DNA of 64,000 nucleotides from Zygnema circumcarinatum SAG 698-1b (Eukaryota; Plantae; Zygnematophyceae): positions 1,007,873 through 1,071,872 of the forward strand of contig CM074816.1 in NCBI GenBank assembly GCA_037447605.1, in the 5' to 3' direction. Shown here piece by piece: positions 12,751 through 52,388 of this stretch (position 1 is its first letter; every line of letters starts with the position of its first letter). The notes beneath the pieces are model-generated. The model was not told the DNA's origin. It was given only the letters and a program-made list of their open reading frames with translations, and did no database searches. Both the position numbers and the translations under genes were made by a program.

Positions 12751-12756
12751 TACTGT

Positions 12757-15700
12757 AGTGTAGGAAACTGTACGGACATAGTCACGCGTGTCGAGTGTTT
12801 CGCAAGTGGTGCGAATCCCAAGACCCTTTGATCGTATGGTTCATCATGTTATGTTTTTGGCGGCGAGGTTTAGGAAGGACATGTATAAGACTACTGTTTT
12901 CTGTATCTTTGTCAACTGGACCTTTTGAGGGAAGCATAGGATGCTTGAGCTCTTTTTCTATTTTGGAATAAAGTTTTTGTGGATATATGTGTTGTTCCAT
13001 GTATGATTGAGACTCTTGAAAATGTCTAGGAAAGGAAAGGCTTCTAAAGATGAGATAAAAGATACTGAGAGAGAGAGAAATAGGGTCAAGTTCTACAAGT
13101 GGTATTAGAGCAGGACATGATGATATGGAAAAATATTCAGTCACTTTGTTTGATGGGACAAATTAACTTTCTTGGAGTCAAAACATGGAGGCAGTGTTCG
13201 AAGTGAAGGAGTTGATGGAGTTGGTGGATGGCACAAAAGCCATACCAGATGTAGAGAAAGAGCTCGAGTAGTTTGCAAATTGAAAGAAGAAAAACGATAA
13301 AGCAAAAGCTTTAATTCTCACTTCAATGAAAACCCTACATAGAATAGCACTTAGAGGATTAACAACGAAAAAAATATAGACAAAGCTCCTAAACATTTAC
13401 TCATAAAAAACGCAGCACATGGGATAGTAGCATATGTAGAGTTTACATCTATCAAGATGAGGGAGACAAAAACTCTAGATAACCACAATATCAGATTTGA
13501 CAGTGAATTGAAAATACTAACTGAAATCGACAAATCTATCTTAGAAAACGACTAGGCCTATATGTATCTTCAAGTGTAGGTAGCTGTTACACTTGTAATC
13601 GCCTTGGATATTCAGCAAAGAATTGCATGAGTAAAAGAATTGCAAATTCTGTTATCACTAAACAAAATAACGCCTATGCTATAAAATTTTGAGTTGCCCC
13701 AACAACTACCTCTCTATCAAAAAATCAGATTGGATTATAGATTGAGAGGCTAGTACTCACGTTATTTGGAAATGGAACACTCTCGGAGAACCCTTGATCC
13801 TTACATTGTAGAAGCTCACTATTTTTAATGTAGTCATTAAGCTGTCAAGAGCAATTTTTAAAACACACTTTTTTATACAACCTTTTTCCTTCCACTTTTT
13901 TCTCTGTCCCCCTTCTCACTCTCTTTAACACCGGCTCCATCTCTCTCCCCTTTCTCTCTTCTTCTTATGCATTTTGCTATTCGAGCAACGACCAAAGCAA
14001 GCAGCCCATAGTGAAACAGCTTACAAAAACAAAAAATAACATGCAAAAATTGGTCTCATACACAGTAATAGTTAGACAACGACATCCACAATAAAAAATT
14101 TGACATCGTTAATATAAAAATTGATATTCATTCAACAATGAATGTCAAGGAGCACAAAATTTACAAACTGCGAGTTTGGCTCACTTGTTGGACACAGTTT
14201 GACCTCTCTTTTAAGGTAAGCTGCACCCAATAATAAATCTTACCTTAAAAAAAAAAAAAATGTAACTTAAACCTTGAATCCTGACCAAATCTGACCTTGA
14301 CTCCAACCACCCACTGTGGACACCCGCGCGAGAGAGAGAGTCTCTCTCTTTTGACTTCCTCTACAACGAAGGACCAAAAGAAAAATTTCAAGAAAAAAAA
14401 AAAAAAAAAATATTTATTATCGCATTTCAACTCCACGACGACAAAGAGGAAGATTTCTCATGAGGAGTGCAGACTGCTACGACGGATCCAAAATGATTTG
14501 CTGTACAAGTAAAACAGAATTTTCTGTTAGAACTTATTGCTAAGGCAAGGATGTTAAAAAGCTGGAAAACAATCATGCATTCTTTTAGTAAAAGGAGACA
14601 ACAAACCAGCTCCAATCCTCTGCAATAGATAAAATTGCAACTCGACTAAAGAATGGAAGTCTTACTTGTTAGATTTGTTGCTTTGCACCTTTAATTCGCT
14701 CGCCTTGTTCACTTATCAAATGTGCCTTTCATTTTTTTGGGCTGGCATCCAAACGTGCTTATCTATTTTGTGGGCATTAACCACTATGGTGCGAAAAAGG
14801 CGTTGGGCAGGCAATCCATCATGAGCGGCGGCCATTGTGTCACTCTAAAAGAGGGCGAGAAATTCAGCACGGGCAGCGACAGTGGCGAGAACTCCTCAAT
14901 CTTACCTCCAACCGATACCTACACGGCCTAGCTATTTGTTGTAACCCTTAAAAAGGCAACTATAATTGTAGGTATTAGGCCATACAATTGGAGCCTAGAA
15001 TGAGAAGCTGGATGATGTATTTCAGAAAAATAGATATAGGCAATTACAAAAAAACTCTTTAGTTTACACCAAAGGAAAAAGAGAGAATTGGATCGTCATT
15101 GGAATCTATGTAGACGATCTCATCATTGTCAGTAATTCTATATCAAGTATTGCAACATTGAAGAAGATGCTTTCGCAGAATTTTAAAATGTCAGACATTG
15201 AAGAGGCAAAATTTCTACTCGGAATTCAGATTAAGAGAGGGCAAGATGGTAAGATCTTACTTACTCAAGAGTAGTATGCAAAAAATGTTTTGAAAAAGTT
15301 TCAACTACTGGATGCATGCCCATGTCCATCACCGATGGATCTTAGCATGAAGCTTTCAGCAAATGATTACCCCAAGAGTGTTCCATATCGACAGGCTATC
15401 GGGAGCTTAATGTACCTATGTAGAGGAGGCAGGGGTTCGTTACAACCTAACTACAGGCACTACTACCGACTACTAGTCGGTTCTTAAACAATCTTGAATA
15501 TGCACATTGGGAAGCAGGTAAAAGAATCTTTCGTTATGTGAAAGGGACAGGAGGGTATGGATTGTCGTTTAGTTTTAATGAGTCTACTCAGGTGTATGGT
15601 TACTCAGACGCTGATCGGGGAAGAGACGTTGATATTGGTAGGTTCACTTTAGGATATGTGTTTTTGTGTGGAGGTTGTATCACATGGAACTCAGAGTTAC

Positions 15701-29902: not shown

Positions 29903-30298
29903 ATCGCAGACCCTCCGCTCTCATAGCCTCCTCTCCCTCTCTATTCCTCCCTCTCCCTCGCCCTCTCCCTCTCCGTCTCCCTCTCCCTCTCCCTCTCGCG
30001 CCCCCTCAGGCAGGCGACCGTCCGCCTCACTCCGCCGCCTCTCCCTCGCCTGCCCCCTCTTCTCAGCGATCCCACGATATCCCAAGTGTGCAAATGTTTT
30101 CCGAAGGAAGTACTTTGGATTGCACTTTTGCGCCCTATTTCACAAGATCTCTGTACGGAATTTGAACTCAGTTCGAGATTCACCGTGGCTGTACGGACAC
30201 AAATATCGGTCCCCTCACCAGGCGGCGCCGACTTTGGCGTTTCTCCTCCCGCGGTCGCCGTACTGGGAGGTACTGTACTTCCACTGTACAGTACAGTA

Positions 30299-33200
30299 CA
30301 GTAGGACCCCGTCATATTTTCCACCTTCAAAAGTGCGTCCTGTAGCGTAACGGAGCTGCGTTCGACGGATCCGCGCCCGTTCAGTTGTACTTGACATGTT
30401 CATATTCAGTGTCACGGACCGGCCTGATCCAGGAATTGCCGACGGAAAATGCGAGACGGCGGCGCCATTTGTTGGCGGCCCACGGGACAGCACACCATCC
30501 AGCTAGGCGCACTCGGAAGCGCCGCAAGATGCCGCCGATTGTCATCAGTTGACCTATCCGAAGGCTCCACGTAGTCAGTCAGGCCTCTCAGTGGGCAGTT
30601 GGCCAATCAGAGGCTGTCACTGCTAAGGCTCAAGATCTATTGTCAGTGTTAAGTAGATGGGATGTCAGTGATGCTTTTTTGTCTTTTAGTGCTGGGCTTA
30701 GTATTTGTATTTGCTGTGTGGTTTGTCTTCTTGTTCTTCTCTTCTTCCTCTTCAGTTCCAGCAACAGATGCTAAGTGTGAGAGAGAGAGAGAGTTCCATG
30801 CCATAGATAGAGAGAGAGAGAGAGAGAAAGAGTCTTCTTGCTGATAGCATTTAGACGTCCCATTCAGCCCAGCCAGACAAAGATTTCAGTGAGAAGATAC
30901 TTTCATCAGAATGACAATCCTCACCAACCGCCGGGCCGGGTGACTTTCCAAAATACAACCTTATCTAAGTTGAGTCCCTGCTTCCCTTTGCCGCCACTAT
31001 GCCAAGCTACCATCTTGTTCTATCCTGCCTCACATTCCTCCCAATGACCAATGATAATCTCAAGCCTAGCCAAGAGACTAGCCGGTGAGTAGTGACAGTG
31101 GGAGGAGAGCCCCTGGGCGAAGGGCTCTGCGATCGAGTCCACGGCGGGAACATCTTCGTGATCCTCGGCGGCTCGCTGGGCCCGCGCTGCATCTCCGAAG
31201 TCTCCCGATCCTCGCTCTATGTCGGCAAAGTGCACTACGTAACCCCACCCAACCTCTTCATCGGGCCAAAGACGGACGCTGAAAGCCGCATGTACACTGC
31301 AGAATTCAGCTCAGCCTCTTTAACCCCACTTATCTTGGAAATGAAATAAGGTTTTGCGCATCCACGCATTTGATACGCTAGGTGCTGCCGACCCCCGTGA
31401 CTCGTGTCATGCTCTCGCCATGGATGGCGAGCCGCAATAAGAGGTGGATGCTGCATCTTCAAGTGAGTTTTATGGAGACTTGGGACCTCAAGAAGAACAG
31501 GCGATCCGAAATCCAAGGACGGATTCAGACTCAGAGGAAGAAGCAGTCAGAGAAAGACTGAAGATGGGCATCACCGAAGAGAACCCTTATCCCAGTCTGG
31601 CTTACCTTGAGCAGATCGAAGTCGCATTGAAGAGCCGTTTAATTTTACTCCAGTGCGTGCTGATGGCCATAAACTGGGCCGGCACCGGAACGATCAAGCT
31701 CATAAACGCCTGCCGGGCCGGCCGCCTACCGCATGCCGTGGAGGGCAGTGAGTCCGACCTTGAGGTCCCCACCGCTGCCCACCAGAGACATGCCACTCTG
31801 AGCCCGGCCGGATAACTACCGCGACTCAGAGTCCCTTCAAGCGCCGCCAGCCGCAAGAGACGCACCCCACAGCAGAGCAAGGGATTCCTGTAAGACACCT
31901 ACCCTCCGGGCGTCGCTGCCACAACTTACCCAACTGTAGCCCTGTGCGAGCAACCTTCAGGCGGCGGACGCATCGCGAAGCGACCCTCCAGCTTTCAGCA
32001 GACCAACCTCAAGCAGAGAAGACACGAGTCGAGATCTCGAAGTTTCCCACAAGATGGACGAGATGATGACCAAATTGATAGCAATGATTCCTGAAAAGAG
32101 TGAGGTGAGGGATACCACGGGCATCATCACAAGAGGCTTCACCGGCAAGCAGGAAGATGCGGAAGCCTGGCTGAGACATCTTGAGGAGAAGGCAGCTTAA
32201 AGGTGACTCAAGGAAGACCCGGATCAAGCCGCCCTTTGAGCTACCGGAAGGAGAGGCGCCAATCGAAGTCGCCCCAAACTGGCACGCGTATGTCGCCGCA
32301 ACCGACAAAGACACATTCAAGCAAGCTTTTGTGACAACGCCGGATTTCGCATCCAATCACTCGCGACCGACTGGGCTACATAGAGCGCTACGCTGATGAG
32401 CCGCCGCTCAATTCACCGGAAGCGCTTCAGGCGCGATGGCAACAATGACGAGAACTTGCCCACTTTCCCCGGTTCTCCAAAGGGTTCCGCAAGGCCATCA
32501 CGTAGAAGGATCTCCACTGATCGTGAGCCGCGCTGACAACCCACCGCCAGATGCCCGGTGCCTTGTTAGAAAGGGCGTGGTTTAATTCTATGATCAAGAG
32601 AGAGGCAAGTAACCATTATGTACTGTAATTCACATTACATGAACGCCAAGGTGATCCACGACAAGATCGACTTCCTACCAGCGCCTCAAGACAATAATCG
32701 CCAATCGTATGATCCCTTACGCTACATCTTCTGTAGAACAAGCCATCTTTCTCCTGCATCCCCGCCAGACGCCCCGCAACCCTATGCGGTGCTCGCTATA
32801 GCCGCTACTCAAGCTTCCCTTCCCCTTTCCCCCGCACTTCGCGATCCGGCGCATCCCATTGAGCCGTGAATCCTCACATACCGTATGCTTCTCGCCCAGA
32901 TATTCTGCCTTTATTCCTATCGCAGACACCAAGAGAGAGAGAAGTCGCCAGGTCATCTCAGGCTGGGCCGGATGACGAGGCAGGGGTTCTAGAGGGCGCT
33001 CGCCTTGCCTCGCTGCCCACCATAACTGCTGCCGCTAGGACCATGGACTCCGCGACTTCGGCTGCATCACTCGGACATGATGCCCGTGTATGCATGCGGA
33101 GACTCTCAAGTGAGAAGGCCCGAAAGGGGAAAGAGGCAGCTGCAGGGAGCTCACCTGCAGAGATCACCTTCATGGACATGCTCCCGGCTACTCCCACACC

Positions 33201-36200
33201 ACCGAGAACTCCGGCTCCCTTTCGCCCGCCTCCACCTCCTTCACCCGCTTACACCATCCTGCAACGACCGCCTATCCACCTGCACCCCATGGACTCCCCT
33301 TCCCTGACAAACGCATTGGGTGCTGAGCCCGATCCTGCTGCCCGCTCACGCACTGCCCAGATTGCCGCAGCATTGCAACCGGCTTGGTCCGAATCCCCCA
33401 TCACTTCAAAAGAGGGTGCTCAAGCCTGGATCGCCGAGATTGCAAATGCCTTGCGCAGGCTCCCTGTCAACCAAAGTGATCCTCATTCACATCCCCTGCC
33501 ATTCCTCCCTGCCGATGTCAACGGCGCCAGCTCCTCTGGCACGGCTCCACCGGTCGCCACCCCTTTCCGGAGAACTTCANNNNNNNNNNGGTGATAGCTG
33601 CACCCAGCTTTCCCCCACACGAGACCATTGGTGATGAGGAGTGGCAGGAAATAGAGGGTCAGATGCGATTGGGGCCAGCAGTCCATTCAGACCCGATCAA
33701 GCATTCACAATTACGCCAAGTGCTGCGCCGAAATCATCTAGTTTTCGCACGACATTCACTCGACATTGGCAAGACCCACCTGATAGAGCACCACATCGAT
33801 ACGGGGGATGCACCTCCCGTGATGACCATGACTCCATACCGCTTTTCCGCCGCTCAGCAGGCCGATGTCGAACGACAGATCGATGAGAACGTGGGTGCCG
33901 GCTTGATGGAACCTGGAGAAGGGCCTTGGGCCACCCTACCGCTCGCCCCAAAGCCGGATGTGGCACACTCACGCCTGCGGGAGACTATCTAAATCAATGC
34001 CATAACGGCGGGGATCCTTATAATGCTGCACGGGATGTGGACTGATTCTCCACGGTGTCTCCCCGAGGATCATGGTGGTTCTCGTGGGCTCCTGCATACG
34101 TTGAATCCTTTCCTCGTAGATCCTCGCGACAAAGCCGATCAGCCAAGAAGATAGAGCCAGCATACCAATGCCGCTTCGTGGCAAAGGGACGGTGCTTCCC
34201 TTTGGGCTCAAGAATCTCCAGCCAGACTCATACTCAAATACCGCCAACCAGGTGTTCGCCCCCGCTGTCTTCAAGGAACCTTTACGCTGATGATGCTTCA
34301 TCCACAAAGAAGGATCGGGTCCTTCCCACCGCAAATACTGACCAAGTCCTCGCATCAGCCTTATCAAGGCCACCAAGATTGCACCCAAGAAGTGCAAATG
34401 GGGCCATCAGGAGATCACTCATCTCGGGCACCGCCTCGGCATCAATGGCCTGAAACCATCACTCGACAAGATTGAAGCGATTGCCCTTATGCCGATTCCA
34501 CAGACCCTCACTCAGCTCAAGTCCTTCTTGGGGCTCACCTCATTCTATCGCCGGTTCATCAAGGGCTATGCCCTTATCGCACGTCCCCTACATGCCTTGG
34601 AGAAGCACGGAGTCCAATACGAATGGAGCCGAGCGCAGGATTTGGCCTTCCACGCGCTCAAGAGTGCCCTCCTTCAGGCTCCTTGTCTGCATCAATTTGA
34701 CCCCACCCTGCCAACCATCATTGACGCTGACTGGAGTCAGACGGGATTTGGGGCAGTGGCCAGTCAAGCCTTTCCGGATGGGGAACACCCGGTCAGTTAT
34801 GCTAGCAGGGTTTGTTTGGAAACCGAGACCAAGTACAGCCCTACAAAGGGTGAGGCCGCGGCTATCCTCTGGGCACTCGAGAAGTTCAAGCTCTTCACGG
34901 CCTACCAGCCCATTATCATCCGGACTGACCACATGCCCCTCACCTGGCTGCACATCATGGCTACCCTACGCCCTAAGTTTGCACGATGGGTGATGAAGTT
35001 GGAGGAGTATAATGTACTTAAGGTCNNNNNNNNNNCTCATTGGTCCATTTCTAATCCCCGCCACTTTTTGCCGCTTCGCCAACATTGCGCTTGTCGGCCA
35101 TACCTTTCGATTTCGAATTTGTCTTACTCCCTCCTCCACCTCCGGTCCTGCCGATACTCCCCATTGCCGAATAACCGAGGAAGCTTCTCCACACGGCCAC
35201 CGACTCGCCTCCCGTCCACGTCATCCTTGGCTCCTCCCCTGCCCTTTGTCTCTTCTTCCTTGCGCCCGCAGGGGCGTGCGCTTGTTCCCCCCCCCCGGCA
35301 TGTGCTACAGATGTAGCGTAACGGAGCTGCGTTCGACGGATCCGCGCCCGTTCAGTTGTACTTGACATGTTCATATTCAGTGTCACGGACCGGCCTGATC
35401 CAGGAATTGCCGACGGAAAATGCGAGACGGCGGCGCCATTTGTTGGCGGCTCCACGGATAAAGATAATTATCCAGTTTAGTGCACTCTAAGTCGCCGTAG
35501 TATGCCGCCATTATTACTGCTGACTCATCCTAAGGCTCTATAGGCCGGCCAGCCCACGCGCTGGCCAATCGTAGGCCGCTACCGCTAAGGCTCAAGATCT
35601 ATTGCCAGTGTTAAGTAGATGGGATGTCAGTGATGCTTTTTGTCTTTTAGTGCTGGGCTTAGTATTTGTATTTGCTGTGTGGTTTGTCTTCTTGTTCTTC
35701 TCTTCTTCCTCTTCAGTTCCAGCAACAGATGCTAAGTGTGAGAGAGAGAGAGAGTTCCATGCCATAGATANNNNNNNNNNCCCAAGGAAGGGCTCTTTGC
35801 GCATCGAGTCCAGCCGCCGGTGGGAACATCTTCAGGATCCCTGCGTCTTCCGCTGCGCGTACCTCTGAGTCTCCCGGATCCTGGCTCTATGCTGCAGGCA
35901 GACCCACAGAACCGACCCAACCCTTCATCAGTTTCAGCACAGACGCGCGAGTGGCCGTACAGCACCTGCAACTAGCTCAACAGTCTCCTTTTAACCCCAC
36001 TTATCTTGTGCCACAGTCCCGAAGAAATTCGCCCCGATTTTGCCGAAACCACCTTTTTGTACGGTAACTTTGAGTTAGCCGTACTATTCGTACGATCCAC
36101 ACTATCCGTACTATTCGTACTAACCGTACTACCCGTACTAGCTGTACTAGCCGTCACGGGCTTACACAAAACTCACCTATTCTCCCCGCAAGTGCCGCCG

Positions 36201-36468
36201 TAAGAGGCGCTCGCTCTTCTCCACTTCTTTTTTTGGCTTCGATACGATACAATACTCCCCGATACGGTACTATCCGTATCAGCCGTACGAGCTTTAGTAG
36301 CCGTTACGGGCTCGAATTTAAACGATACGATACGATACGTACGAACATACAAGAACTCTAACATAATTCCGCTCGCCTATTGGTAACACGGACCTTATAT
36401 TTGCCAAATACAATATTTTCGCCCGATATTTGCCAAATCTATGGCGAAAATATGACGGGGTCCTACTG
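30299..36468. mobile_element. Second copy of the 587-bp MITE, split by a gypsy insertion
   Basis: 30299-30340 and 36016-36468 together reconstitute the reverse complement of 12164-12750; TA at both outer ends. Confidence 0.9.
30341..36015 (+). mobile_element. Ty3/gypsy family D, copy 1 (noisy, gapped)
   Basis: LTR 30341-31335, degenerate PBS, gag remnants, RT (33591-34470), RT/RNase H (34489-35025), 3' LTR 35312-36015; GTCC on both flanks. Confidence 0.9.
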
Positions 36469-36558
36469 TACTGTACAGTAACAGTACAGTACTGTACTGT
36501 GCAATCCGCCGCCCGACCGTACAGGGTGCTGTCCGTACACGTCCGCGGCCCTGCTGTA

Positions 36559-36700: not shown

Positions 36701-38300
36701 CGAAATCTGTTACGGCATATGTACTTCACCAATAAGAGCTCGTGTAGTTAAATGTACAGCACCACTAGGAGCTCGCGACAGGACCCGTGTAGCACAAGAT
36801 AAGTGGGGTTAAAAGGAGATTGTTGAGCTAGTTGCAGATGCTGTACGGCCACCCGAGCGTCTGTGCTGAAACTGATGAAGGGTTGGGGTGGTGCTGTGGG
36901 TCTGCCTGCAGCATAGAGCCAGGATCCGGGGGATTCAGAGGTACGCGCAGCGGAAGACGTAGGGATCCTGAAGATGTTCCCTCCGGCGGCTGGACTCGAT
37001 GCGCAAAGAGCCCTTCCTTGGGGCCTCTCCTCCCCTGTCCTCTCCTCGGCTAGTCTCTTCGCTAGGCTTCTAGTTATCATTGGTCATTGAGAGGAATGTA
37101 AGGCAGGATAGAACAAGATAGGGGCTTGGCATAGTGACAGCAAAGGGAAAACAGGACACAACTTAGATAAAGGTGGTATTTTGGAAACTCACCCCAGCCA
37201 TCGGTTGGCTGGGGAATGTCATTACAATGAAAGTACCTTCTCACTGAAATCTTTGTCTAGCTGGGCTGAATGGGACGTCTAAATGATCTCAGCAAGAAGA
37301 CCCTTTCTCTCCCTCCCTCTCTATATCTATGGCATGGAACTCTCTCTCTCTCTCACACTTAGCATCTGTTGCTGGAACTGAAGAGGAAGAAAAGAAGAAC
37401 AAGACAACAAACCACACAGCAAATACTAATACTAAGCCCAGCACTAAAAGACAAAAAAGCATTACTGACATCCCATCTACTTATCACTGACAATAGATCT
37501 TGAGCCTTAGCACTGACAGTCCCAGATTGGCCAACTGCCCACTGAGAGGCCTGACTAACTATGTGGGGCCTTCTAATAGGCCAACTGCTGACAATCGGCG
37601 GCATTTTGCGGCGCTTCTGAGTGCGCCTAGCTGGATGGTGTGCTGTTCCGTGGGCCGCCGCCTTCACATGGCGCCGCCTTCTCGCCTTTTCCGTCGGCAA
37701 TTCCTGGAGCAGGCCGGTCCGTGACACTGAATATGAAGATGCCAAGTACAACTGAACGGACGCGGATCCGTCGAGCGCAGCTCCGTTACGCTACATCTGT
37801 AGCACATGCCGGGTGGGGAAAACAAGCGCCCGCCCCTGCGGACGCAATGAAGAAGAGACAAAGGGCAGGGGAGGAGCCAAGGATGACGTGGACGGGAGGC
37901 GAGTCGGTGGCCGGGTGGAGAAGCTTCCGCGTACATTCGGCAAGGGGGAGCATGGGCAGGACCGGAGTGGAGGGAGTAAGACAAAGTCGAAATCAAAAGA
38001 TTCGGCCGACTGGCGAACTGGGGACAAAGTGGCAAAAAGTGGCGGGAAGTAGAAACGGACCAATGAGGAGTCGTCATGACAGGGGGGGGTACGAGGAGAC
38101 CGCGCTGTTGGTTGCAAACGCTCAGCCATCGCGGGGGGGAGGAACTGCGGACGTGGCGGCACGAATGTCGATCCAGTGTGAACGCCAGCGCCAGGCGTTT
38201 CCACCAGAGTCAGGGCCTTCCGAAATGATGGCCCAACCTGGGATCTCCGACGGACCGACACAAATGAAGGGGCCCAACCACGGAAAAGCCNNNNNNNNNN

Positions 38301-40465
38301 GAATGCTTAGATTCTGTCGCGTGAACTTCCACCCACTTGGTGTATCTGTCCACGGCTAGGAAGACCCGAATGTAGCCAGAGGGGGTGCCGAGCTGGGGGA
38401 TAGAAAAGGTGTCGATGTTCCAGTCTTCGGCGACGCCGCGTATCGGGATCTCACCCATCTCGAGGGGTTGGCGGTCGGGGGGAGCAGAGCGCTTGCCGCG
38501 TTGGCAGCGGGTGCAGGTTTCGATGTAGCGGCTCACGGCGCCATGGAGGCCGGGCCAATAGTAGCGTTCCTGCAGCAGGGCCACCATCTTCTTCTGGCCG
38601 AGGTGGAAGCCTGCAGGTTGGGCATCGTGGGCAACGTCCAGGATTTCCATACGCTCGTTAGGGAAGGGAATAGGTATGCCGGAGGGGAGGTAGAGAATCT
38701 GTCCTTCATCATCGACAGAGAATTTCCGAGCGCGGCGGAGCAGCCGAGCCCTCGCGGTGTCCGTGACAAAAGGGGGCAATGTGCGGGTCATGACGTAGCG
38801 CAGAAGGGAGGAGTCGGAATGGACGTCATTGGCGCTGGGGAAATGGGGAGGAAGAAAGGGAGCTTCACCATCGTCATCCATGAGGAGTTCCCACGGATCC
38901 GCATGGGGGTGGCCGTGGGTGAAGTCAGGGTCTTGCCAGCGATGGAGGGTGGTGGCCGTGGCCGGAATATCGATCAGCCCATCTGCGAATATGACATCAT
39001 GTAAGTCTTGCTCTGCAATAAAAATCTCAATGGGAAGATGCTCAGGGTTCAAGAGGGTGGGTGGAGGGATGGGTTCAGGAACGGCCGGATCGTGGCAGAG
39101 GAGGGGAGCCGAGGGATTGCGACTGAGGCCATCAGCATTGTCGTGACTACGGCCAAAACGGTGAGTGACTTTGAGTACATTATACTTCTCCAACTTCATC
39201 ACCCATCGTGCAAACTTAGGGCGTAGGGTAGCCATAATGTGCAGCCAGGTGAGGGGCATGTGGTCAGTCCGGATGATAATGGGCTGGTAGGCCGTGAAGA
39301 GCTTGAACTTCTCGAGTGCCCAGAGGATAGCCGCGGCCTCTCCCTCAGTAGGGCTGTACTTGGTCTCGGTTTCTGAACAAACCCTGCTTGCATAACTGAC
39401 CGGGTGTTCCCCATCTGAGAATGCTTGACTGGCCACTCCCCCAAAGCCCGTCTGACTCCAGTCAGCGTCAATAATGGTGGGAAGGGTGGGGTCGAATTGA
39501 TGCAGACAAGGAGCTTGAAGGAGGGCACTCTTGAGCGCTTGGAAGGCCAAATCCTGCGCGCGGCTCCATTCGTAGTGGACTCCGTGCTTCTCCAGGGCAT
39601 GTAGGGGACGCGCAATAAGGGCATAGCCCTTGATGAACCGACGATAGAATGAGGTGAGCCCCAAGAAGGACTTGAGCTGAGTGAGGGTCTGTGGAATCGG
39701 CATAAGGGCAATCGCTTCAATCTTGTCGAGTGATGGTTTCAGGCCATTGATGCCGAGGCGGTGCCCGAGATGAGTGATCTCCTGGTGGCCCCATTTGCAC
39801 TTCTTGGGTGCAATCTTCAGACGCGCACTGATAAGCTGTTGCAGGACTTGGTCAATGTGTTGCAGGTGGGAGGACCAGTCCTTGCTGTGGAGGGAACCAT
39901 CATCCACGTAAGGTTCGCAGAAGGCACGACAGGGGCCGAACACCTGGTTGGCCAGGCGCTGGTGAGTCTGGCTGGAATTCTTGAGCCCGAATGGAAGCAC
40001 TGTCCACTGCACGAAGCGCGTGGCTGTGCGAAGCCCTGTCTTGCAGCGATCGGCCTGTCGCAAAGGGATCTGCCAGAAGGATTTCTGCATGTCAAGTGCC
40101 GAGAACCACCGGTCATCAGGGGAGACGCCGTGGAGAATCAGGTCCACATCCGGTAATGTATAGGGATCCTACTTCGTTGTTGCATTCCGTTTCCGGTAGT
40201 CCCCACAGAAGCGGAGTGTGCCATCCGGCTTTGGGGGCAGAACGGCCGGGCTGGCCCAAGGCCCTTCTTCGGGTTCCATCAAGCTGGCAGCCACGTTCTC
40301 ATCGATCTGTCGTTCGACATCGGCCTGCTGCGCGGCGGAAAAGCGGTATGGAGTCAGGGTCATCACGGGAGGCGCATCCCCCGTATCGATGTGGTGCTCA
40401 ATCAGGTGTGTCTTGCCGATGTCGAGTGAATGTCGTGCAAAAACTAGGTGATTTCGGCGCAGCAC
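38301..40465 (-). CDS. pol: Family D pol: RT, RNase H, integrase (frameshifted near 40150, truncated at a gap)
   Basis: LRFCGDYRKRN, LDMQKSFWQI, PFGLKN, YVDD; DADWS..PVSYASR, TDHMPL; HD..H..C..C zinc finger; VDRYTKW. Confidence 0.93.
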
Positions 40466-40590: not shown

Positions 40591-41540
40591 TCACTGGCGG
40601 CAACAGTTCCTCCGTCGGCGCACAGAGGGCTGGACCCGGAGGAGCAGGANNNNNNNNNNAGCTGGACTCGGAGGAGCTGGAGGGGGAGTCTCGTCATCGG
40701 TATCAGAATTGGCCGATCCATAAGAAGAATGGGGGCTGCCGACCGAATGGTACATGGTGATCTCTGGGTAGGAGACCTCTGCCGTGGCATGGCGTTTGGG
40801 GAAGGCGGAGGTGGTAAGGGACTCGAGGATGATGGGGAAGGAGCAGTCTGTCCCGCCAGCAGATAAGTGCAGCTGACATGTAGCAAAGTCGATTTGTGCT
40901 CCCATCGCAATGAGCCAATCTGAGCCCAGCAGGATAGAATAGTGTTTTGCGGCCGTGATGACCGCATTCACCGTGGCTCCCATCTCGCCAAGGCTGATGA
41001 TCACTTGGGCGCTGCCCAATCCTTCATGTAAACTCCCTTCAACCCCCACATATCGGGGAATGGGCTCAAGTGTCTTGTCCAACTTAACCCCTGCAGCCTT
41101 CATTACTGGCTTGGACAGAACTGTGCGCATAGCTCCTGTGTCGATCATGGCTTTGCTGGGATGACCGTTGAGCCATACATTGACAATGATTTGCACGTTG
41201 GGTGTGGGGATCAGAGGGAGGATCTGAATCTGGCGAGGAGGATGGCGGGGAGAGCAAACTGGGTCCGGAGGAGGTGCCGTGGCCATGTGGTGGATATCGG
41301 CCGGTGAGGGGATGTCCAGAGGAGGTGCCGTGGGAACCGGGGGAGGCCGCATGGTGGCCTCTGCACTGTCGGCCAGCTTACGAACTACGGCTGCAGCACC
41401 TGGTACCAACTGCATCAACTGGGACAAGGTAATGCCGATCTTAGCCTTGTCTCCCATGAGCTGATGCACCATGCGTTCAATCAGGGATACACCGTCTGTC
41501 GGTGGGGGTGGTCGACGATCGGCTGCTTGGGGGTAGAAAC
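40591..41540 (-). CDS. Family D gag C-terminus and aspartic protease
   Basis: KAMIDTGAMRTVLS retropepsin motif; the ORF is cut at 41540 by the GAAAC-bounded insert. Confidence 0.88.
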
Positions 41541-43626
41541 TGTTGGTGCAAGGGGCAGCAAGAAAGGAAAGACACAAGGAAAGGGCAACACATGCCCTGG
41601 GTATCAGAGCTCAAAACTTTTCTTTTTCTTCTCCTTGGGCCACATACCGCTTCCGCCACGATATGCCTTCTCGTCCACCTCTTGCCAGGTGCGCACAGCG
41701 GAAACTAAACTCCCCACCTCAACAAGTGCACTTCTTCATCTCCTCCATGGTCTCGCCTCCTCAACTCCACGCTCCTCCAATGATCTCCTCGTGTGGAGCA
41801 ACACACCGCCCATACAATGGTCGCCTCCACTCATCCACCACGTCAATCCAACACGAGGACTCACATGACAAATGATACAGTAGTGAGGAGAAAGCCCACG
41901 GCCCCAAAACTCCTTAAACTCCATGAGTGTAATACAAGCTCTTCTTGGAAATCTACATAATCCCTTATGCTAGATTCTCCTCCTCTCATGAGCACTATCC
42001 TATCCTCTCATAGATAGCCTACACCCCAACTGCAGTAGCCAAGCACTACTTGCCTCCATGAACTCCTCCTCTACCTCAACACATGAGGGACATGTGAGAG
42101 GGGCAGAGGGATGAGAAGCAAATTCACCTTCCACCCTTTCTCCCTCTTCACTGTCCATGGAAACTTCCCTCCTGGTGCCCGCAGCACTCTCACTCATTTT
42201 TCACTCACGTGCATACACAACACACGAGAGGCGGAATAGAAAAACGTAGGAGAAAGCTCCCAGCCTAAAACTCCTTTATGATGACAAGCTTTCCAACTCA
42301 AGCCCCCATAAGCCTAGTCAAGCTTTCACCACATGATCACTTCACCTTCACGTGAGGCAGCTCNNNNNNNNNNTTGCCAAAGCCATGCCTTCAAACTGCC
42401 ATAGCCTTGCAATGCATATCAAGAAGGTTTCTAACTTACACACCCACTCTCACTATATAGTATGGGGCTGTGACGTGACCATGTCACGTCACACGCGCCG
42501 GGACCATGCATGCAACAACCTTATTCAAACAACCTAAATAAACTACTTCGTGTCTTGCTATGCATAGTACACCCAGCCTGGCAACGTACCAACACCACCG
42601 CCCTAACCCAGATGGCCATGTACTCTACCGCCGAAATAACTTCCCCGCCACCCACAAGGACTATCTTCCGTATCGCCAGTAGTGGCTCACCGACTCCACC
42701 CATTCTCGCCTTTGTCACAAGATCAGTCCACGATTCCGTACGCCAAGACCGATTCCTCGGCGCGGTACCAAATGTCGGACTCCCGGCCGTAGTGTCCGTA
42801 CCGACCGTACGGTCTGTACGGTCCATACTATCCGTACGGTTGCGCGGTCGGTCTCGCCGCCGCGCGCACGCTGAAGTAAGTCCGTCCCCATACATGTCAC
42901 ACCTAGAAGCACACCCCTAGGAACTAAGCGCCAACACAAACATGCTAATCTGAACTAACTATGTACACTAACAGGACACACCATCTAGCTTCTTCACTAA
43001 AGCTTAGCATGATGAGAGCTAGTTCCTTCACGACCTTCATACACAAGGCCGGACTCCTCTAGGCCTCAGCCTCAGCCTACTCTTCCTATACAACAACGTT
43101 CGAGCAGCATAACATTCAGAGAGAGTGAGTGAGTGAGAGAGCCAAGCTTGCTCCCTCTTAAACTATGGCGGCCGGCGTGACGTGACCACCGATGTCACGT
43201 CACAGGCGCACTAGCAAGCGCATGCATTCAACAGCCAGCAAGCCGTTCAACGGCCAGCTACGCGTTCAACAGCCAGCTACACGACTTCACGTAAACCTAC
43301 ACCAGCATCGACCTACANNNNNNNNNNGCGACCAATCATGTCGCTTCGTGCAGATCCGCCTCTCGCGCCAAATATCTTCTCGTCCATACGTTTCGCGTCG
43401 TCCGTACAGTCGCGCGCCGTCCGTACGGCCGCGCTCCTTTTCGGTCAAGCACATTCCGTGCACCCCCTTTGGTACGATCTAAGCCTAAGCCGTAATTCCA
43501 CGACCCTAGACCTTCCCTAGACCTGCCGTACCATGCCCTATCGATACGGGCACCCCCCATGTTCGGTCCTACACCAAACATGACCAACATGGTCAACCTC
43601 CCGCCGTTAGTGCTTTCACTCGGAAA

Positions 43627-44258
43627 ATGTCCGAGGCGTTACAGAGGGCAAGGCAGACCCTGTTAGCAGCCCAGTCGCGGCAGAAAGCCTATGCTGATCG
43701 TCGTCGTGCTGCATTAACCTTCGCTGTAGGCGATCAGGTACTGCTGAGCACGTCGAACTTGCGCCTGAAGACTTACGGCGGAACCCGTAAGTTGTGGCCT
43801 CGCTTCATGGGACCTTTTTCGGTCGTGAAGCGAATCGGTGAGGTCGCTTACCGGTTGGCTTTACCGGCTCATATGAAAGTGCATCCGGTCTTTCACGTGG
43901 GTCTTCTTAAGGCATACCGCAGCGATGGGGGAGTCCAACCACCTCCCCCTCCAGTGGAAGTTGAGGGTGACCTCGAGTATGAGGTAGAGACCATCCAAAC
44001 CCACAGGACTGTGAGTAGAGGTCAGACTTCCCGCCACGAATATCTCGTGAAATGGTTGGGCTATGGGGTTGAACATAGCACGTGGGAACGTGAAAGCAAT
44101 CTGACAAATTGCAAGGAGCTCCTGAGATTGTACTGGGAGGCGCAGACCGCTGGTGAGCGGGCGAGGGCGGCTAGGGGGGTTCCCGAACCGTCCACGCGCT
44201 ACTCGGAAAGGGACTTGACCGGGATTAACGCTGAGCCCTCCCGTACACCCCGCAGACA
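43627..44258 (+). mobile_element. Orphan chromovirus 3' fragment: integrase C-terminus plus chromodomain
   Basis: FMGPFSVVKR..HPVFHVGLLK; YEVETI..YLVKWLGY..STWE; paralogous to 50724-51250. Confidence 0.85.
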
Positions 44259-44268
44259 NNNNNNNNNN

Positions 44269-47200
44269 GAACCATCTGGCCCCCTCTTCAGCTGGATCCC
44301 CAAGAGATATTGGGCCTCTCCAAGGTCAGTCATCTGGAAATTCTCCTGCAAGAGCTCCTTCAACTCTGCAATGCTGCGAAGAGACTTGCTGATCATGATC
44401 AGGTCATCCACATAGACCCCAACAAACAACTTATCATCATCTTCGCCAACTGAGTACACACAAGTATCAGTCTCAAAACGATCAAACCCATAGCCCTGTA
44501 AGAGTTCATCGATCTTCTCATACCACACGCGAGGGGCCTGCTTCAGCCCATACAAACTCTTCACGAGTCTGCACACAAGGTTCTCCTTTCCCTTCTCGCG
44601 TTTCCCCTCTGGCTGCTCCATGTATATCTCTTCATCAAGATCTCCATACAAGAAAGCAGTCTTGATGTCCAACTGGTGGACATGCATCCCCTCTGCGGCT
44701 GCAATAGAAATGAGGGAGCGGAGGGAGTTGAACTTCACCACAGGAGCAAAGGTCTCTGTGTAGTCAATCCCCTCCTTCTGACTGTAGCCCTTGGCCACAA
44801 GTCGCGCCTTGTACCTATCGATGCTGCCGTCCGCCTTCCTCTTAACCTTGAAGACCCATTTGCAGCCGATGGCACGCCTCCCAGGTGGGAGCTTCTCCAA
44901 GCGCCAAGTCTGATTCTCAATCAGACTGTTCCACTCACTATCAATGGCCTCCTGCCACTTGATCTGATCTGGCCCCTCAACAGCTTCCCCGTAAGTCTGA
45001 GGCTCAACAGCATGGGCCATGTAACAATGGGCAATCATGTCCATGTCACCTGAGAATGATGCAGAATGATCCTGGGCATTCTTTCGTGCTTTCTTCCGCA
45101 TGCGCTTCGTAGGCACAGCCGGACTGAAACGATTTGGAGGCCGCCTGGTCCTCCCACTTGTCTTCTCCATCACAGAGGGATGCTCTTCAGGCTGCTCCAC
45201 AGCTCGCATTGGAGCTGACACTTCCTCCTCTGGCTCATCAGCCATCTCCTCCAGCAACTCTTCATTCGCCGCTGCACGTGGTTCTGAAGCCACCAACTTA
45301 TGCGGCATGCTGGCTGTCTCCTCTCGTGAACTGGAGGTCTCCTCCTGAGACTTCGTAGCTGATGCCTCCACCGATGGTCCCACAGACTCCTGCATGTCTC
45401 CCCAATGTGGAGAACCCAAGGGAGTAAAGGTCACCGGTTTTGTCTCATCATCACTCTCTGACTCTACAGGCCGTCGTGAATGAATGGGCGTGGCACTCTC
45501 CTCCGTCTGAGCTTGAGTGGCCACTGGCACCTTCTCCTGCTCAGGGTGACTCACAATCACTTCACCTTCATAGGTGAATCCGAGTGGACACGACTCATCA
45601 GCACGCCTCCATGAGTGGGTAAAGGGGACGTGTGCAGCATCCTCATCCACCCTCACGTCCCTGCTGATCTCTACCTTCTTGGTCTCAAGGCTATACACCC
45701 TGTAAGCCCTGCAATCACTGGCGTATCCAAGAAAGAAGCCCTCCTTGCCCCTTGGGAAAAACTTCCCTCCACGCGCGACCTTCGGTATCGCATACCAGCA
45801 CTTTGATCCAAATGCTTTCAAGTGTCCCACAGTGGGCTTCGTCCCACTCCACACCTCATCAGGCACTCGATCCTCCAAGACCGATGACGGACACCTGTTC
45901 CTCACATAAGCGGCAGTCATCACTGCTTCTCCCCAAAATGTCACAGGAAATGGTGAGTCATGCAACATCGTCCTTGCCATGTCTCCAAGAGTCCTGTTCA
46001 CTCTCTCTGCAGCTCCATTACTCTGCGGTGAGTATGGAGCAGAGAACTCCTGCTTGATTCCCAAGCCTCTCAAATACTCACTGAACACCTTGTTCTTGAA
46101 TTCTCCTCCATTGTCTGAACGGAGGTTCTTGAGTAGATGGCCGCTCTCCCGCTCTGCACGCATCTTCCAAGCTCTGAAGGCTGGATAAGCGTCAGACTTC
46201 TGTGTCAAGAGCACCACCCAAATCTTTTCGTGAGTAGTCATCAAGGAAAGTGATGAAATATCGACTTCCTCCCAAGCTCGCTGGGGTGATGGGGCCACAC
46301 AAGTCTGTGTGCACAAGCGCCAACGGCTCCTTGGCGCGCCCCTCTCCATCTCCTCTTCGCACGAATGGCCCACGATGGATCTTCCCTTTAATGCAGTCTT
46401 CGCAAATCCTCTGTGGATCAACCGCACCCTCCAAGTCCAAGCCTCGGACCAACCCCTTCTGAGCTAACTCCCGCATGGCTCGAAAACTCACATGCCCAAG
46501 CCTCCTATGCCACTTCTGCACCTCATCTTGGGTCATAAGCAAAACTGACTCTCCTTCTTCTTCAGGCTTACTCCACTGTAAGACGTACAGGCCCTCTCTC
46601 CGGTGCCCCTGAAATAAGACATTCCCAGTTTTCTTATGTCTAGCCACGCAATTCTGCTTATCAAAAGTGACTGAGTAACCCCTGTCGCACACTTGTCCCA
46701 CAGACACAAAGTTGTGCTGCAACCCAGGGGTATAAAGCACGTTACCAATCATGGTAGCTGCCCCTTCACTCTCTCCTCCTAAGACGATCCTCACGTCGCC
46801 TCCGCTGGTCACCTTCACTTCCTCACCGGTCGCTGACTGAACTGAACGAGGGGCCTGGAGCGATCTCATCTCGTAGAACAACCCCCAGTCTGCACACATG
46901 TGCGTCGACGCCCCTGAATCAATGAGCCACGGCTTCTCGGGTCCTTCACACATTCTCCCCACAAACTCCACATGCTCCTTCTCAGCAAACATCAAGTTTG
47001 TATCAATAGCAGCACTTCTGCAATCAATGCTCTTGTGACCCTTCTTCTTGCACTTGAAGCAAGCGCCTGTGAACTCCTTCTTGCTCGACTTCGTCTTGGC
47101 GTCCCCTCCCTTCACTTGGGCCGCCTTGCCGGAACGGCACTCGTTGGAGTAGTGACCTGGCTTCCCACAAGTGAAGCATGTCCCCTTGGGACGATCTCCG

Positions 47201-47988
47201 CCACCTCCTCCTTTCGCCTTGCCTTTCCCAAAAGGCTTCCCCTTCATCGCCAACACGCTCTCACTCGCATCGGATGCGTCATGAAGAGCGTCCTCTTCAC
47301 GAATCCGCTTCTTCACCTGCTCAAAGGTCAAAGAAGAAGTGGTAAGAACTGTTCGAAGGGCGCTGCATGTGCCGTCAAAGCGACTGGGCAAACCAACCAA
47401 GAACTGGCTGATCTTATGATCTGACTCAAGACCCTTGCCCATCACCACGAAGCGCTGCATGAGACTGTCAAAGCGCCCCATGTAGTCAGTCAGCTTCTCA
47501 TCCAAGCTCATCTTCATCTTCCCGAGCTCCGTGTACAGGTGCACCACTGTGACGCTGTCCTTCGCATCGTACATGTCCTCCAAACACTTCCACATCTCGT
47601 GTGACGTGCTGAGGTCGTAGAGCATGTGTGAAGGCGTCCCCTTCACACTCATTGCAATCTGAGTGATGGCCTTGTTGTCACGGGCCTTCCACTTTGCAAG
47701 CTCCTCCACGGATGTAGCCGGCGGCGCCTTCACCTTCCCAGTCACATGACCAAGAAGTCCCTTCCCTTCAAGTATGGGAGTCAGCCGCCACTTCCATCCC
47801 TTGTAGTCTGTCCCATCAAATGCAGGGACATTAAACTTCACACTAGCCCCGGTTTCCTCTTCACCATGAGCTCTGATACCACTTGTGAGAGGGGCAGAGG
47901 GATGAGAAGCAAATTCACCTTCCACCCTTTCTCCCTCTTCACTGTCCATGGAAACTTCCCTCCTGGTGCCCGCAGCACTCTCACTCAT
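44269..47988 (-). CDS. pol: Copia E Gag-Pol (one extra A near 46228; truncated at a gap)
   Basis: FDGTDYKGWK gag, two CCHC knuckles, WLIDSGAS, WHRRLGH..C..C, rve, RT HQLDIKTAFL and YVDD. Confidence 0.92.
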
Positions 47989-49741
47989 TTTTCACTCACG
48001 TGCATACACAACACACGAGAGGCGGAATAGAAAAACGTAGGAGAAAGCTCCCAGCCTAAAACTCCTTTATGATGACAAGCTTTCCAACTCAAGCCCCCAT
48101 AAGCCTAGTCAAGCTTTCACCACATGATCACTTCACCTTCCGTGGCTGACTCTCCACATACGGAGGAGACTCTCACAAGGAGTCCCTCACCATTGCCAAA
48201 GCGGCCGCTGAAACTGCCATAGCCTTGCAATGCATATCAAGAAGGTTGCTAACTTACACACCCACTCTCACTATATAGTATGGGGCTGTGACGTGACCAT
48301 GTCACGTCACACGCGACGGGACCATGCATTGCAACAACCTTATTCAAACAACCTAAATAAACTACTTCATTGCTATGCATAGTACACCCAGCCTGGCAAC
48401 GTACCAACACCACCGCTCTAACCCAGATAGCCATGTACTCTACCGCCGAGCTGAACTTCCCGCCGTCACCCACAAGGACTATCTTCCGTACGCAAAGTAG
48501 GCTCCGCCGACTCCACCGACTTCGCCGCCTTTTGCCGCCGCATCAGTCCACGATTCCGTACGCCAAGACCGATTCCTTGGCGCGGTACCAAATGTCGGAC
48601 TCCCGGCCGTAGTGTCCGTACCGACCGTACGGTCTGTACGGTCCATACTATCCGTACGGTTGCGCGGTCGGTCTCGCCGCCGCGCGCACGCTGAAGTAAG
48701 TCCGTCCCCATACATGTCACACCTAGAAGCACACCCCTAGGAACTAAGCGCCAACACAAACATGCTAATCTGAACTAACTATGTACACTAACAGGACACA
48801 CCATCTAGCTTCTTCACTAAAGCTTAGCATGATGAGAGCTAGTTCCTTCACGACCTTCATACACAAGGCCGGACTCCTCTAGGCCTCAGCCTCTGCCTAC
48901 TCTTCCTATACAACAACGGTCGAGCAGCATAACATTCAGAGAGAGTGAGTGAGTGAGAGAGCCAAGCTTGCTCCCTCTTAAACAATGGCGGCCGGCGTGA
49001 CGTGACCACCGATGTCACGTCACAGGCGCACTAGCAAGCGCATGCATTCAACAGCCAGCAAGCCGTTCAACGGCCAGCTACGCGTTCAACAGCCAGCTAC
49101 ACGACTTCACGTAAACCTACACCAGCATCGACCTACACAAGGTCATCCGTACTGTTCCGCCACCGGCCGTACACGTCCGCCGACCAGCCGTACATATCCG
49201 CCGCCCGCTCAAGTGCTGACTCGGTCCCCTTCTGAGTTGACCTCGTCAGAGCCGCGGACCGCACTAAGGGTCCACGCAATGCCACGTGCCGCCTCCTCAT
49301 TCGCCGCCGACATCTTCAGTCTCTCAACCGACTTCCGCGTCACGTCACGCCCGAAGACTGCGTCGCTATCTGCACGCTGGCGCGACCAATCATGTCGCTT
49401 CGTGCAGATCCGCCTCTCGCGCCAAATATCTTCTCGTCCATACGTTTCGCGTCGTCCGTACAGTCGCGCGCCGTCCGTACGGCCGCGCTCCTTTTCGGTC
49501 AAGCACATTCCGTGCACCCCCTTTGGTACGATCTAAGCCTAAGCCGTAATTCCACGACCCTAGACCTTCCCTAGACCTGCCGTACCATGCCCTATCGATA
49601 CGGGCACCCCCCATGTTCGGTCCTACACCAAACATGACCATTCATACATGACATTGTCCCTATACCACCACATTGATGTCCAGGACAACATCCATGCTAG
49701 GAACTAAGTACCAACACCTTGATGTACCCTATACATCAACA

Positions 49742-50549: not shown

Positions 50550-50723
50550 TGTAACAACTGAAAAACGCCTTCTTCAGCCTGCGCGGAATTGCACTTAACC
50601 AGCACTCAGAGTTCAGAGAGAGAGAGAGGGAGAGAGCTTCAGAGTGGGGAGCAGCCCGGGGTGGGCGTGCAACCGTATGCCGGTACGTTGGTTGGGTGAC
50701 GACAGTCCCCCTCNNNNNNNNNN

Positions 50724-52388
50724 ATGAGCTCCTGGCAATTGGTTAAGTTGCCCTCGGCTTCCCATGTGCTATGTTCAACCCCATAGCCCAACCACTTCAC
50801 GAGGTATTCGTGACGGGAAGAACGACCCTTTCTCACAATACGGTGGGCTTGAATGGTTTCAACTTCATACTCAAGTTCACCCTCAACTTCCACTAGTGGG
50901 GGAGGTGGCTGGATCCTCCCATCGCTGCGGTAGGCTTTTAGCAATCCCACATGAAAGACCGGATGCACCTTCATATGGTCTGGTAAATCCAACCGGTAAG
51001 CGACCTCATTGATGCGCTTCACGACCTTGAAGGGTCCGATGAGCGGGGCCACAACTTACGTGTTTCGCCATAAGCCTTGAGTCTCAAGTTCGCCGTACTT
51101 AACAACACTTCGTCGCCCTCATTGAAGGTGAGTTGGGTACGGTGACGGTCAGCATAGGCCTTTTGTCGCGACTGGGCCGCTAGCAGGGTCTGCTGTGCCC
51201 TCTGCAGCGCCTCGGACATTAGCCGGACAAAAGATCTGACTGCGGGAGGTTGAGTCCCATCAGTCCCTCTCAGCTTCCAAGGGTCGGGGGTTCTATGGAC
51301 GCCCATGTTCCACGGATCAGGGGGCTGATCCCTTGGTTGCAGGGGATTTAAAGGATGCTGGCCAAAATTCAGGAAGAAAGGGGTGGTACCAATGGATTCC
51401 TGGAAAGCATTATTGATGGCGTATTCAGCCACTGGGAGCAGTTCATCCCACCCATCCGGGGTGGGTCCCACATAATGCCGGAGGTAATCCTCTTGGATCC
51501 TGTTCACCCGTTCCGTCTGGCCATCGGTTTGCGGGTGGAAAGCTGTACTCAATGCCTGCTTGGTCCCCACGATTTTGAGCACTTCCGTCCAAAAATGGCC
51601 GGTGAATCGTGGATCGCGGTCAGACACAATTTCTGACTGCAGACCATGCTGGCTCCACACCTTGTCAACATACAACCGTGCAATCTCGTCGGCCCCAGCT
51701 GTCTTAGTAGTTGGTGCAAAGTGCACCATCTTGCTGAGCCGATCGACAAAGACGAGGATGGAGTCATGCCCCCGAGGTGTCACAAGAAGNNNNNNNNNNC
51801 GGTCAGACACAATTTCTGACTGAAGACCATGCTGGCTCCACACTTTGTCAACATACAACCGTGCAATCTCGTCGGCCCCAGCTGTCTTAGTAGTTGGTGC
51901 AAAGTGCACCATCTTGCTGAGCCGATCGACAAAGACGAGGATGGAGTCATGCCCCGAGGTGTCACAGCAAGATCTGTGATCAAGTCCATACCCACACTAT
52001 CCCATTTCCGAAAAGGAGGTGTGAGGGGATGCAGCTGGCCAGGGATCCTGCCAGTGCGGGGTTTGTTTCGTTGACAAGTTGGACAAGCGAGTACATACGC
52101 TTTCACATCCCTCGAGAGTCCAGGCCACCAGAACTCTCGGAGCAGTGCCTCACGGGTTTTGGCAACTCCCATGTGACCTCGGTACGGAGGATCATGTAGC
52201 TCACCCAGAATGAGCTGCTGTACAGTCCCGGCCTTGGGCACGACCAACTGCTGGCCGTGGTACCAAAATCCGTCCTTTGACACCACTTTGTCCTTATAGC
52301 CATTACCTTGGCCATCCAGGAACAAAGGATCACCAGTATACCCCTCCTGAATCATCTGTCTGAGATCAGAGAGAGCAGGAGGGTTGAT
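50724..52388 (-). CDS. pol: Chromovirus integrase plus chromodomain (broken by gaps and indels)
   Basis: HD..H..C..C, FVDRLSKMVHF, SDRDPRF, HPQTDGQTERVN, GPF, YEVE..YLVKWLGY..STWE. Confidence 0.9.

Follow-up and report, generated by a model that had tools for sequence, protein, structure and literature searches.

A 64,000-nucleotide stretch of the genome of Zygnema circumcarinatum SAG 698-1b (contig CM074816.1, positions 1,007,873 to 1,071,872 of assembly GCA_037447605.1; the whole stretch is called the window below) contains two independent insertions of one family of long terminal repeat (LTR) retrotransposon. The family, referred to here as the split-end family, is a high-copy Ty3/gypsy element of this freshwater green alga in which the two LTRs end differently and a polypurine tract (PPT) is lacking. 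Both insertions have the order target site duplication (TSD)-A-primer binding site (PBS)...GGCA-B-GA-A-B-TSD; the TSDs are different and the order is identical. A is an LTR core of about 1 kb that runs from TGTAGCG to CTTATCT, and B is the 9-bp sequence TGTGCTACA. The internal B, the GA spacer and the start of A together form the palindrome GCTACA-GA-TGTAGC. Chance would predict 0.04 occurrences of the 18-mer B-GA-TGTAGCG in the window; exactly two are present.

Copy 1 occupies 30341-36015 on the plus strand. Its left TSD, GTCC, lies at 30337-30340 and is followed by the 5' LTR core A (30341-31335), which ends in CTTATCT without a terminal CA, as the comparison of the two LTRs shows. The TGG that opens the PBS stands at 31336, directly after this end. 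The PBS of copy 1 is degenerate (TGGAAATGAAAT; the full stretch at 31336-31351 reads TGGAAATGAAATAAGG), as judged from the intact PBS, TGGTATCAGAGC, which sits in copy 2. At the other end of the element, a pyrimidine-rich 3' untranslated stretch (35036-35300, purine fraction 0.29) finishes with a C-run (35288-35296) and GGCA (35297-35300). Then come the internal B (TGTGCTACA, 35301-35309), the GA spacer (35310-35311), the 3' LTR core A (35312-36006, delimited by LTR comparison and by comparison with copy 2), the terminal B (TGTGCCACA, 36007-36015) and the right TSD, GTCC (36016-36019). The terminal B supplies the right-hand CA of the element and is identical to the internal B at 8 of 9 positions; copy 1 is the older of the two insertions. 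Since a paralogous empty site carries a single GTCC, the ends of copy 1 and its 4-bp TSD are fixed. This empty target (12709-12712, minus strand) lies in the other copy of the terminal inverted repeat (TIR) element that hosts copy 1; in the flank alignment the left flank stops at 12709 and the right flank starts at 12712. In contigs of public sequencing runs the flanks diverge past 36015, and some contigs jump from about 30341 to about 36016-36025, representing further empty copies of the host element. As for the host element itself, copy 1 lies 15 bp inside a short element with inverted repeats CAGTACAGTACAGTAGGACCCCGTCATATTTTC... (30270-30325 and 36446-36497). This host element, probably a non-autonomous DNA transposon, has a second copy at about 12161-12762 on the opposite strand and many more in the public runs.

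Copy 2 lies on the minus strand, where a BLAST comparison of copy 1 with the window reveals collinear pieces from 62922 down to 36788, split by nested insertions. The left TSD, CGGG (62923-62926), precedes the 5' LTR core A (61925-62922). The PBS TGGTATCAGAGC (61913-61924) directly abuts CTTATCT with no CA between them, and three further elements of the window carry this 12-mer after their LTRs. At the 3' side, GGCA, the internal B (TGTGCTACA) and GA (37796-37810, found by sequence inspection and by the 18-mer count) stand immediately 5' of the 3' LTR core A (36797-37795), which is contiguous and free of gaps. The terminal B (TGTGCTACA, 36788-36796) is identical to the internal B (9/9) and is followed by the right TSD, CGGG (36784-36787). 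The two LTRs of copy 2 align with 98.4% identity over 1001 columns, and their identity extends from TGTAGCG through CTTATCTTG. Past this shared part, the 5' LTR continues into GTATCAGAGC, giving the PBS TGGTATCAGAGC, whereas the 3' LTR continues into TGCTACA and then into the flank. The termini of copy 2, whose outer limits rest on flank comparison, are gap-free (3' end 38290-36700, 5' end 63100-61500), and the TSDs match across 26 kb. An open reading frame (ORF) of 259 codons beginning with ATG (62208-61429, minus strand) opens inside the 5' LTR of copy 2, crosses the LTR end and PBS and continues into the leader. The ORF may be a coincidence, because a Kozak-like GCCGCCATGG is present farther downstream, near 61843. 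A protein search with the ORF, aimed at finding more copies, gave no match.

What occupies the place of the PPT? No purine run of six or more is present within the 130 nt upstream of the 3' A in either copy. The purine fraction of this stretch is 0.29-0.32 (68-71% pyrimidine), and the position of a PPT is taken by the C-run, GGCA and B-GA. The only G-rich stretch is AGGGGCG(G/T)GCG, about 30 nt upstream of B. The original prediction, drawn from the letters of copy 1, had described the core A from TGTAGCG to CTTATCT, its direct passage into the PBS without a CA, the 3' order GGCA-B-GA-A-B-TSD and a C-run in place of a purine tract. All four observations hold at the copy 1 coordinates given above, and copy 2 repeats the order with a perfect 12-nt PBS.

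Collinearity with copy 2 indicates that the sequence missing from the three gaps of copy 1 amounts to at least 3 kb. The gap at 33580-33589 conceals about 1.7 kb or more in the protease region, the gap at 35026-35035 conceals at least 1.1 kb that includes the integrase, where copy 2 has its own gap (38291-38300), and the gap at 35771-35780 conceals about 0.3 kb of the 3' LTR. No assembly gap reaches a diagnostic junction in either copy. The LTR pair of copy 1 is mosaic, with 100% identity over 139 and 134 nt and much lower identity elsewhere; identity between 31076-31335 and the matching stretch of the 3' LTR is about 70%, as estimated by eye. Contig cover of 31076-31463 is zero in the four public runs. 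Identical and diverged blocks alternate along the pair (35451-35561 against 30480-30600, and 31076-31335 against 35781-36006), and the mosaic is due either to gene conversion, to recombination between subfamilies or to chimeric assembly of a collapsed high-copy repeat. Copy 2 is the better witness because the LTRs of copy 1 are mosaic and 31076-31463 is without contig cover. The mosaic LTRs, the three gaps and the uncovered stretch of copy 1 are what one might expect if the layout were peculiar to dead copies, or were an artefact in which a gapped short-read assembly had joined pieces of a collapsed high-copy repeat into chimeras. We consider this very improbable. The gap-free ends of copy 2 show the same junctions, its TSDs match across 26 kb, the empty site of copy 1 and the uninterrupted site of a nested insertion tie the pieces together, and a public-run contig covering 35252-35365 spans GGCA-B-GA-A of copy 1.

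The other LTR elements of the window provide an internal comparison. The three that carry the same PBS 12-mer as copy 2 are canonical. A chromovirus nested in copy 2 (60288-50550, minus strand) is flanked by the 5-bp TSD GAGAG, and copy 1 provides its uninterrupted site. It starts with TGTAGCG, both of its LTRs end in TGTTACA, and a single spacer nucleotide (T) separates the 5' LTR from the PBS. A copia-like element has the canonical arrangement ...CA-AG-PBS. A second nested LTR element (provisionally 42090-49640, minus strand) has LTRs of about 1.5 kb and reads ...CACA-AG-TGGTATCAGAGC, and a short LTR element of about 3 kb (55306-55317 and 52380-52800, minus strand) reads ...AACA-AG-PBS, also canonical. 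Since these neighbours all have the ordinary arrangement, the odd layout is a property of the split-end family and not of the genome, the assembly or the method. The nested chromovirus shares with the split-end family the genome, the LTR start TGTAGCG and an iMet-type PBS, and its right terminus TGTTACA resembles B (TGTGCTACA), whereas it differs in having LTRs that end alike, a 1-nt spacer before the PBS and a 5-bp TSD. Because B resembles the right terminus of this chromovirus, B-GA-A looks like the LTR-LTR junction that would be expected of a canonical relative.

Several further features of these neighbours were recorded. The chromovirus LTR opens with a hairpin, TGTAGCG-AAA-CGCTACA, whose heptamer is the start of the split-end LTR; a chromodomain-like sequence, YLVKWLGYG...HSTWE, lies near 50820, and the first part of the chromovirus 3' LTR is missing at a gap (50714-50723). 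Upstream of the 3' LTR of the 42090-49640 element stands TGACCA-TGT-TGGTCA, which is also palindromic with the LTR start. A TSD was sought for this element and not found; TGTCCCT occurs in inverted orientation in both flanks. The repeat blocks of the short element of about 3 kb (52510-52673 and 55441-55604) are 99% identical; the element may be copia-like and non-autonomous, or it may be a terminal-repeat retrotransposon in miniature or large retrotransposon derivative (TRIM/LARD).

The assignment of the split-end family to Ty3/gypsy is based on structure and on coding capacity. Both copies have long terminal direct repeats, 4-bp TSDs (GTCC and CGGG) and the element termini TGTAGCG...GCTACA. 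A tRNA-type PBS stands beside the 5' LTR: TGTGGTATCAGAGC is absent and TGGTATCAGAGC abuts the LTR. We take this 12-mer to be a match to the 3' end of plant initiator tRNA-Met (iMet-type). Copy 2 has the pol order protease, reverse transcriptase (RT), RNase H and integrase: an aspartic protease region (40591-41577, minus strand; gag-asp_proteas 3e-09, RVP_2 2.7e-06) is followed by a pol ORF (38301-40147, minus strand) in which RT (RVT_1, 3.7e-22), RNase H (RT_RNaseH, 1.1e-26) and the integrase H2C2 zinc domain (Integrase_H2C2, 2.6e-16) share one frame before it runs into the gap at 38291-38300. In copy 1 a broken pol remnant (33591-35025) is left between the gaps at 33580-33589 and 35026-35035, collinear with 40594-39167 of copy 2; Pfam identifies RT_RNaseH domains in 34489-35025 and finds no match in 33591-33992 or 34055-34453 of the stretch that is collinear with the RT of copy 2. 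Gag is represented by a faint Ty3_capsid match (E = 0.061) in 60284-61192 (minus strand) of copy 2. The protein relatives are ordinary Ty3/gypsy polyproteins with at most 41% identity, and the two best matches with full coverage carry rve and a PHD finger. Of two more distant pol relatives, one (L001) has no LTR pair in its contig, and the other (L002), which bears env, is of canonical build: its LTRs end alike, its PPT is clear and its TSD is 4 bp long. A metagenome scan for B-NN-TGTAGCG returned 120 chance matches, none of which shared LTR sequence.

The 4-bp TSD, the TG...CA ends and the integrase zinc domain indicate that the family is probably mobilized by a DDE integrase. The original prediction had called the element integrase-encoding, and the H2C2 zinc domain of copy 2 bears this out for the zinc domain but not for the catalytic core, which is unassembled in both copies. 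No tyrosine recombinase was found in the assembled parts of the copies, with at least 1 kb of the 3' region of pol lying within gaps. Could a tyrosine recombinase or other non-DDE enzyme, as in PAT/Ngaro/TOC-type elements, be encoded in the unassembled sequence? In formal terms the layout is A1...B1-A2-B2, the missing 3' region of pol (at least 1 kb in both copies) would leave room for such an enzyme, and DIRS-type TOC elements occur in green algae. This route is nevertheless very improbable, given the 4-bp target duplications in both copies, the TG...CA element ends, the integrase H2C2 domain in frame after RNase H, the tRNA-type PBS and the ordinary Ty3/gypsy nature of the relatives in RT, RNase H and integrase. 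Equal LTR ends and a PPT, two features that define the canonical replication layout, are lacking in this Ty3/gypsy family. The inequality of the ends is evident from the junctions themselves, with the 5' LTR reading CTTATCT|TGG and the 3' LTR reading CTTATCT-TGTGCTACA, instead of LTRs that end alike with a CA before the PBS.

In canonical reverse transcription, the 5' end of minus-strand DNA is the source both of the nucleotide that adjoins the PBS in the newly made 5' LTR and of the final nucleotide of the newly made 3' LTR. Because of this common origin, the two LTRs end alike after a canonical cycle. No linear canonical cycle can set A directly before the PBS at the left end and also finish with A-B at the right end. 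That canonical reverse transcription needs matching LTR ends was already argued in the original prediction, and the argument is sound and survived our testing. The only B in the predicted transcript is the one just upstream of the 3' LTR. Since reverse transcription equalizes the LTR ends and the transcript has only that B, the terminal B must be re-created in every cycle from the B upstream of the 3' LTR.

Simpler origins of the terminal B were considered and rejected. A plain LTR of the form TG...CT with B contributed by the target is ruled out by the empty site, which is without B. Snap-back copying of the start of A is ruled out as well: the terminal B differs at two positions from the reverse complement of that start (TACGCTACA) and equals the internal B. 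A retained copy of the tRNA/PBS would give TGGTATCA, which rules it out; the resemblance between B-GA and the PBS (9/11) is not significant once TG...CA is imposed (P = 0.07). A rearranged master element moved by canonical machinery is logically excluded, as its ends would be equalized in one cycle.

Then, how could the internal B be transferred to the right end? We propose, with a probability of roughly 0.45, that the right integrase recognition end of the family, B, lies outside the repeat copied from the 5' LTR and is regenerated via joined cDNA ends. Plus-strand synthesis would start at or next to B and give a cDNA of the form [B-GA-A]-PBS-internal-GGCA-[B-GA-A], with B-GA at its left end and a right end without CA. 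The right end (CTTATCT, perhaps with TG copied from the terminal CA of the tRNA) would be joined to the left end to give A-B-GA-A, either by ligation into a 2-LTR circle or by a template switch of RT across the shared TG. This TG is common to the end of A, the start of the PBS and B (CTTATCT-TG-G..., CTTATCT-TG-TGCTACA and GGCA-TG-TGCTACA). Integrase would cut both strands after the CA of the palindrome, producing 3'-processed ends with 2-nt 5' overhangs and the loss of GA. The opened molecule, A-PBS...GGCA-B-GA-A-B, would integrate with a 4-bp target duplication, and each cycle would thereby transfer B from the left cDNA end to the right-hand terminus of the provirus. Cutting A-B-GA-A at CA|GA|TG reproduces the observed layout exactly. 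The model predicts a linear cDNA with its left end at or near TGTGCTACAGA-TGTAGCG and its right end at CTTATCT(TG). The stronger form of the proposal, in which end-joined cDNA is the obligatory integration substrate and the position of a PPT, upstream of the 3' LTR, instead holds the right attachment (att) site, is put forward somewhat more tentatively.

A circle model of this kind was the core of the original prediction. Two of its consequences are borne out, namely that the junction cut reproduces the layout and that the terminal B equals the internal B. Two others are not: the A-B-GA-A joint was not seen in any contig, and the window holds no permuted insertion. The first of these negatives applies to contigs of four public runs aligned to copy 1 and is weak, as contigs drop rare forms; copy 1 served as the reference, and its diverged LTR/PBS junction is without cover. 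Two contigs from this comparison (runs X7 and X11) deserve mention. One joins unrelated ...GGGCCGC to ACAGA-TGTAGCG (35307), and another joins host-element sequence at 36093 to CAGA-TGTAGCG (35308). They could be copies with (C)A-GA before a 5' LTR or members of a diverged subfamily.

Several observations weigh against regeneration of B through joined ends. Besides the absence of the joint from the contigs, neither permuted nor tandem-LTR insertions occur in the window. Retroviral 2-LTR circles are generally regarded as dead-end products. If the G-rich stretch upstream of B served as the plus-strand primer, it would predict a longer extension of the right end than is observed. The evidence for an integrase is the H2C2 zinc domain of copy 2 only, the catalytic core falling within assembly gaps in both copies. 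Finally, two copies were inspected, and the LTR pair of one of them, copy 1, is the mosaic described above.

The joining could also be accomplished by RT without a ligated circle. Plus-strand synthesis, on reaching the 5' end of the minus strand, would switch to the 3' end of the minus strand, and integrase would then cut the palindrome. The 5' end of the minus strand would correspond to CTTATCT plus the TG copied from the CA of the tRNA, the target end would be the complement of TG-TGCTACA-GA-A, and the product would be a relaxed circle or a linear form with tandem LTRs. Hepadnaviruses circularize through a short terminal redundancy, which this route resembles. It would make a host ligation step unnecessary and would account for a precise junction in every copy, and the TG shared by the end of A, the start of the PBS and B offers a site for the switch. 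That microhomology, however, is just 2 nt, no junction contig was found in the four public runs, and genomic sequence alone cannot separate a switch from the ligation version. We regard the switch without a ligated circle as unlikely.

Regeneration of B through joined ends has partial precedents. In bacterial IS3-, IS30- and IS911-type circles, the abutted ends lie 2-3 bp apart and are then cut and integrated by a DDE enzyme. These are DNA transposons, however, without reverse transcription and without LTRs. Among retroviruses, the integrase of prototype foamy virus (PFV) cuts a palindromic LTR-LTR junction with an AT dinucleotide, and no more than two nucleotides disappear between the junction and the provirus (PMC1180852). 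In vitro, the tetramer of HIV-1 integrase cleaves the palindrome at the HIV-1 LTR-LTR junction (PMC1905944). The 2-LTR junctions of PFV and HIV-1 resemble that of the split-end family in having CA, a short spacer and TG (here CA-GA-TG), such that cuts after each CA give two processed 3' ends. In these viruses, however, the LTRs are identical, the linear cDNA is also competent for integration, and the circle route is optional and disputed. The split-end family is a Ty3/gypsy element and not a retrovirus, and its 5' LTR without B seems to require an end-joined intermediate.

The closest parallel in repeat order comes from tyrosine recombinase elements. PAT, Ngaro and TOC-type elements have split direct repeats A1-B1-A2-B2, in which the internal B-A junction equals the joined ends (PMC4157794), and TOC1 of Chlamydomonas is a DIRS-type element (PMC9940879). 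The split-end family shares the order A...B-A-B (here A...B-GA-A-B, with a B of only 9 bp). Whereas PAT/Ngaro/TOC elements have a tyrosine recombinase, no target duplication and no tRNA PBS next to the LTR, the split-end family has TSDs of 4 bp, one of them confirmed by an empty site, and combines TG...CA ends with an integrase zinc domain and an iMet-type PBS. In DIRS-1, the internal complementary region is, according to the paper that cites the original work, an "internal circle junction sequence" (Cappello et al. 1985, cited in PMC5006619). DIRS-1 is like the split-end family in that an internal copy of the abutted ends restores termini through an RNA that is missing one of them, but it differs in its inverted terminal repeats, its tyrosine recombinase and its other proposed cDNA pathway. 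The split-end layout had been presented as not known from earlier descriptions, and a full-text literature search likewise found no description of it in an integrase-encoding element.

Whether joined-end (2-LTR) forms can serve as integration substrates has been debated in retrovirology since the 1980s; such forms are usually dismissed as dead ends. The fixed genomic layout of an abundant family that appears to demand an end-joined intermediate makes this question directly testable. Programs that detect LTR elements by demanding matching TG...CA ends and a PPT will reject split-end elements or set their limits wrongly. The family also shows that a gypsy lineage can succeed without a PPT. If the proposal is true, 2-LTR-type junctions are productive in nature in the split-end family and not dead ends, and the layout of the family would bridge integrase-bearing LTR elements and split-repeat tyrosine recombinase elements, which have been thought mechanistically separate.

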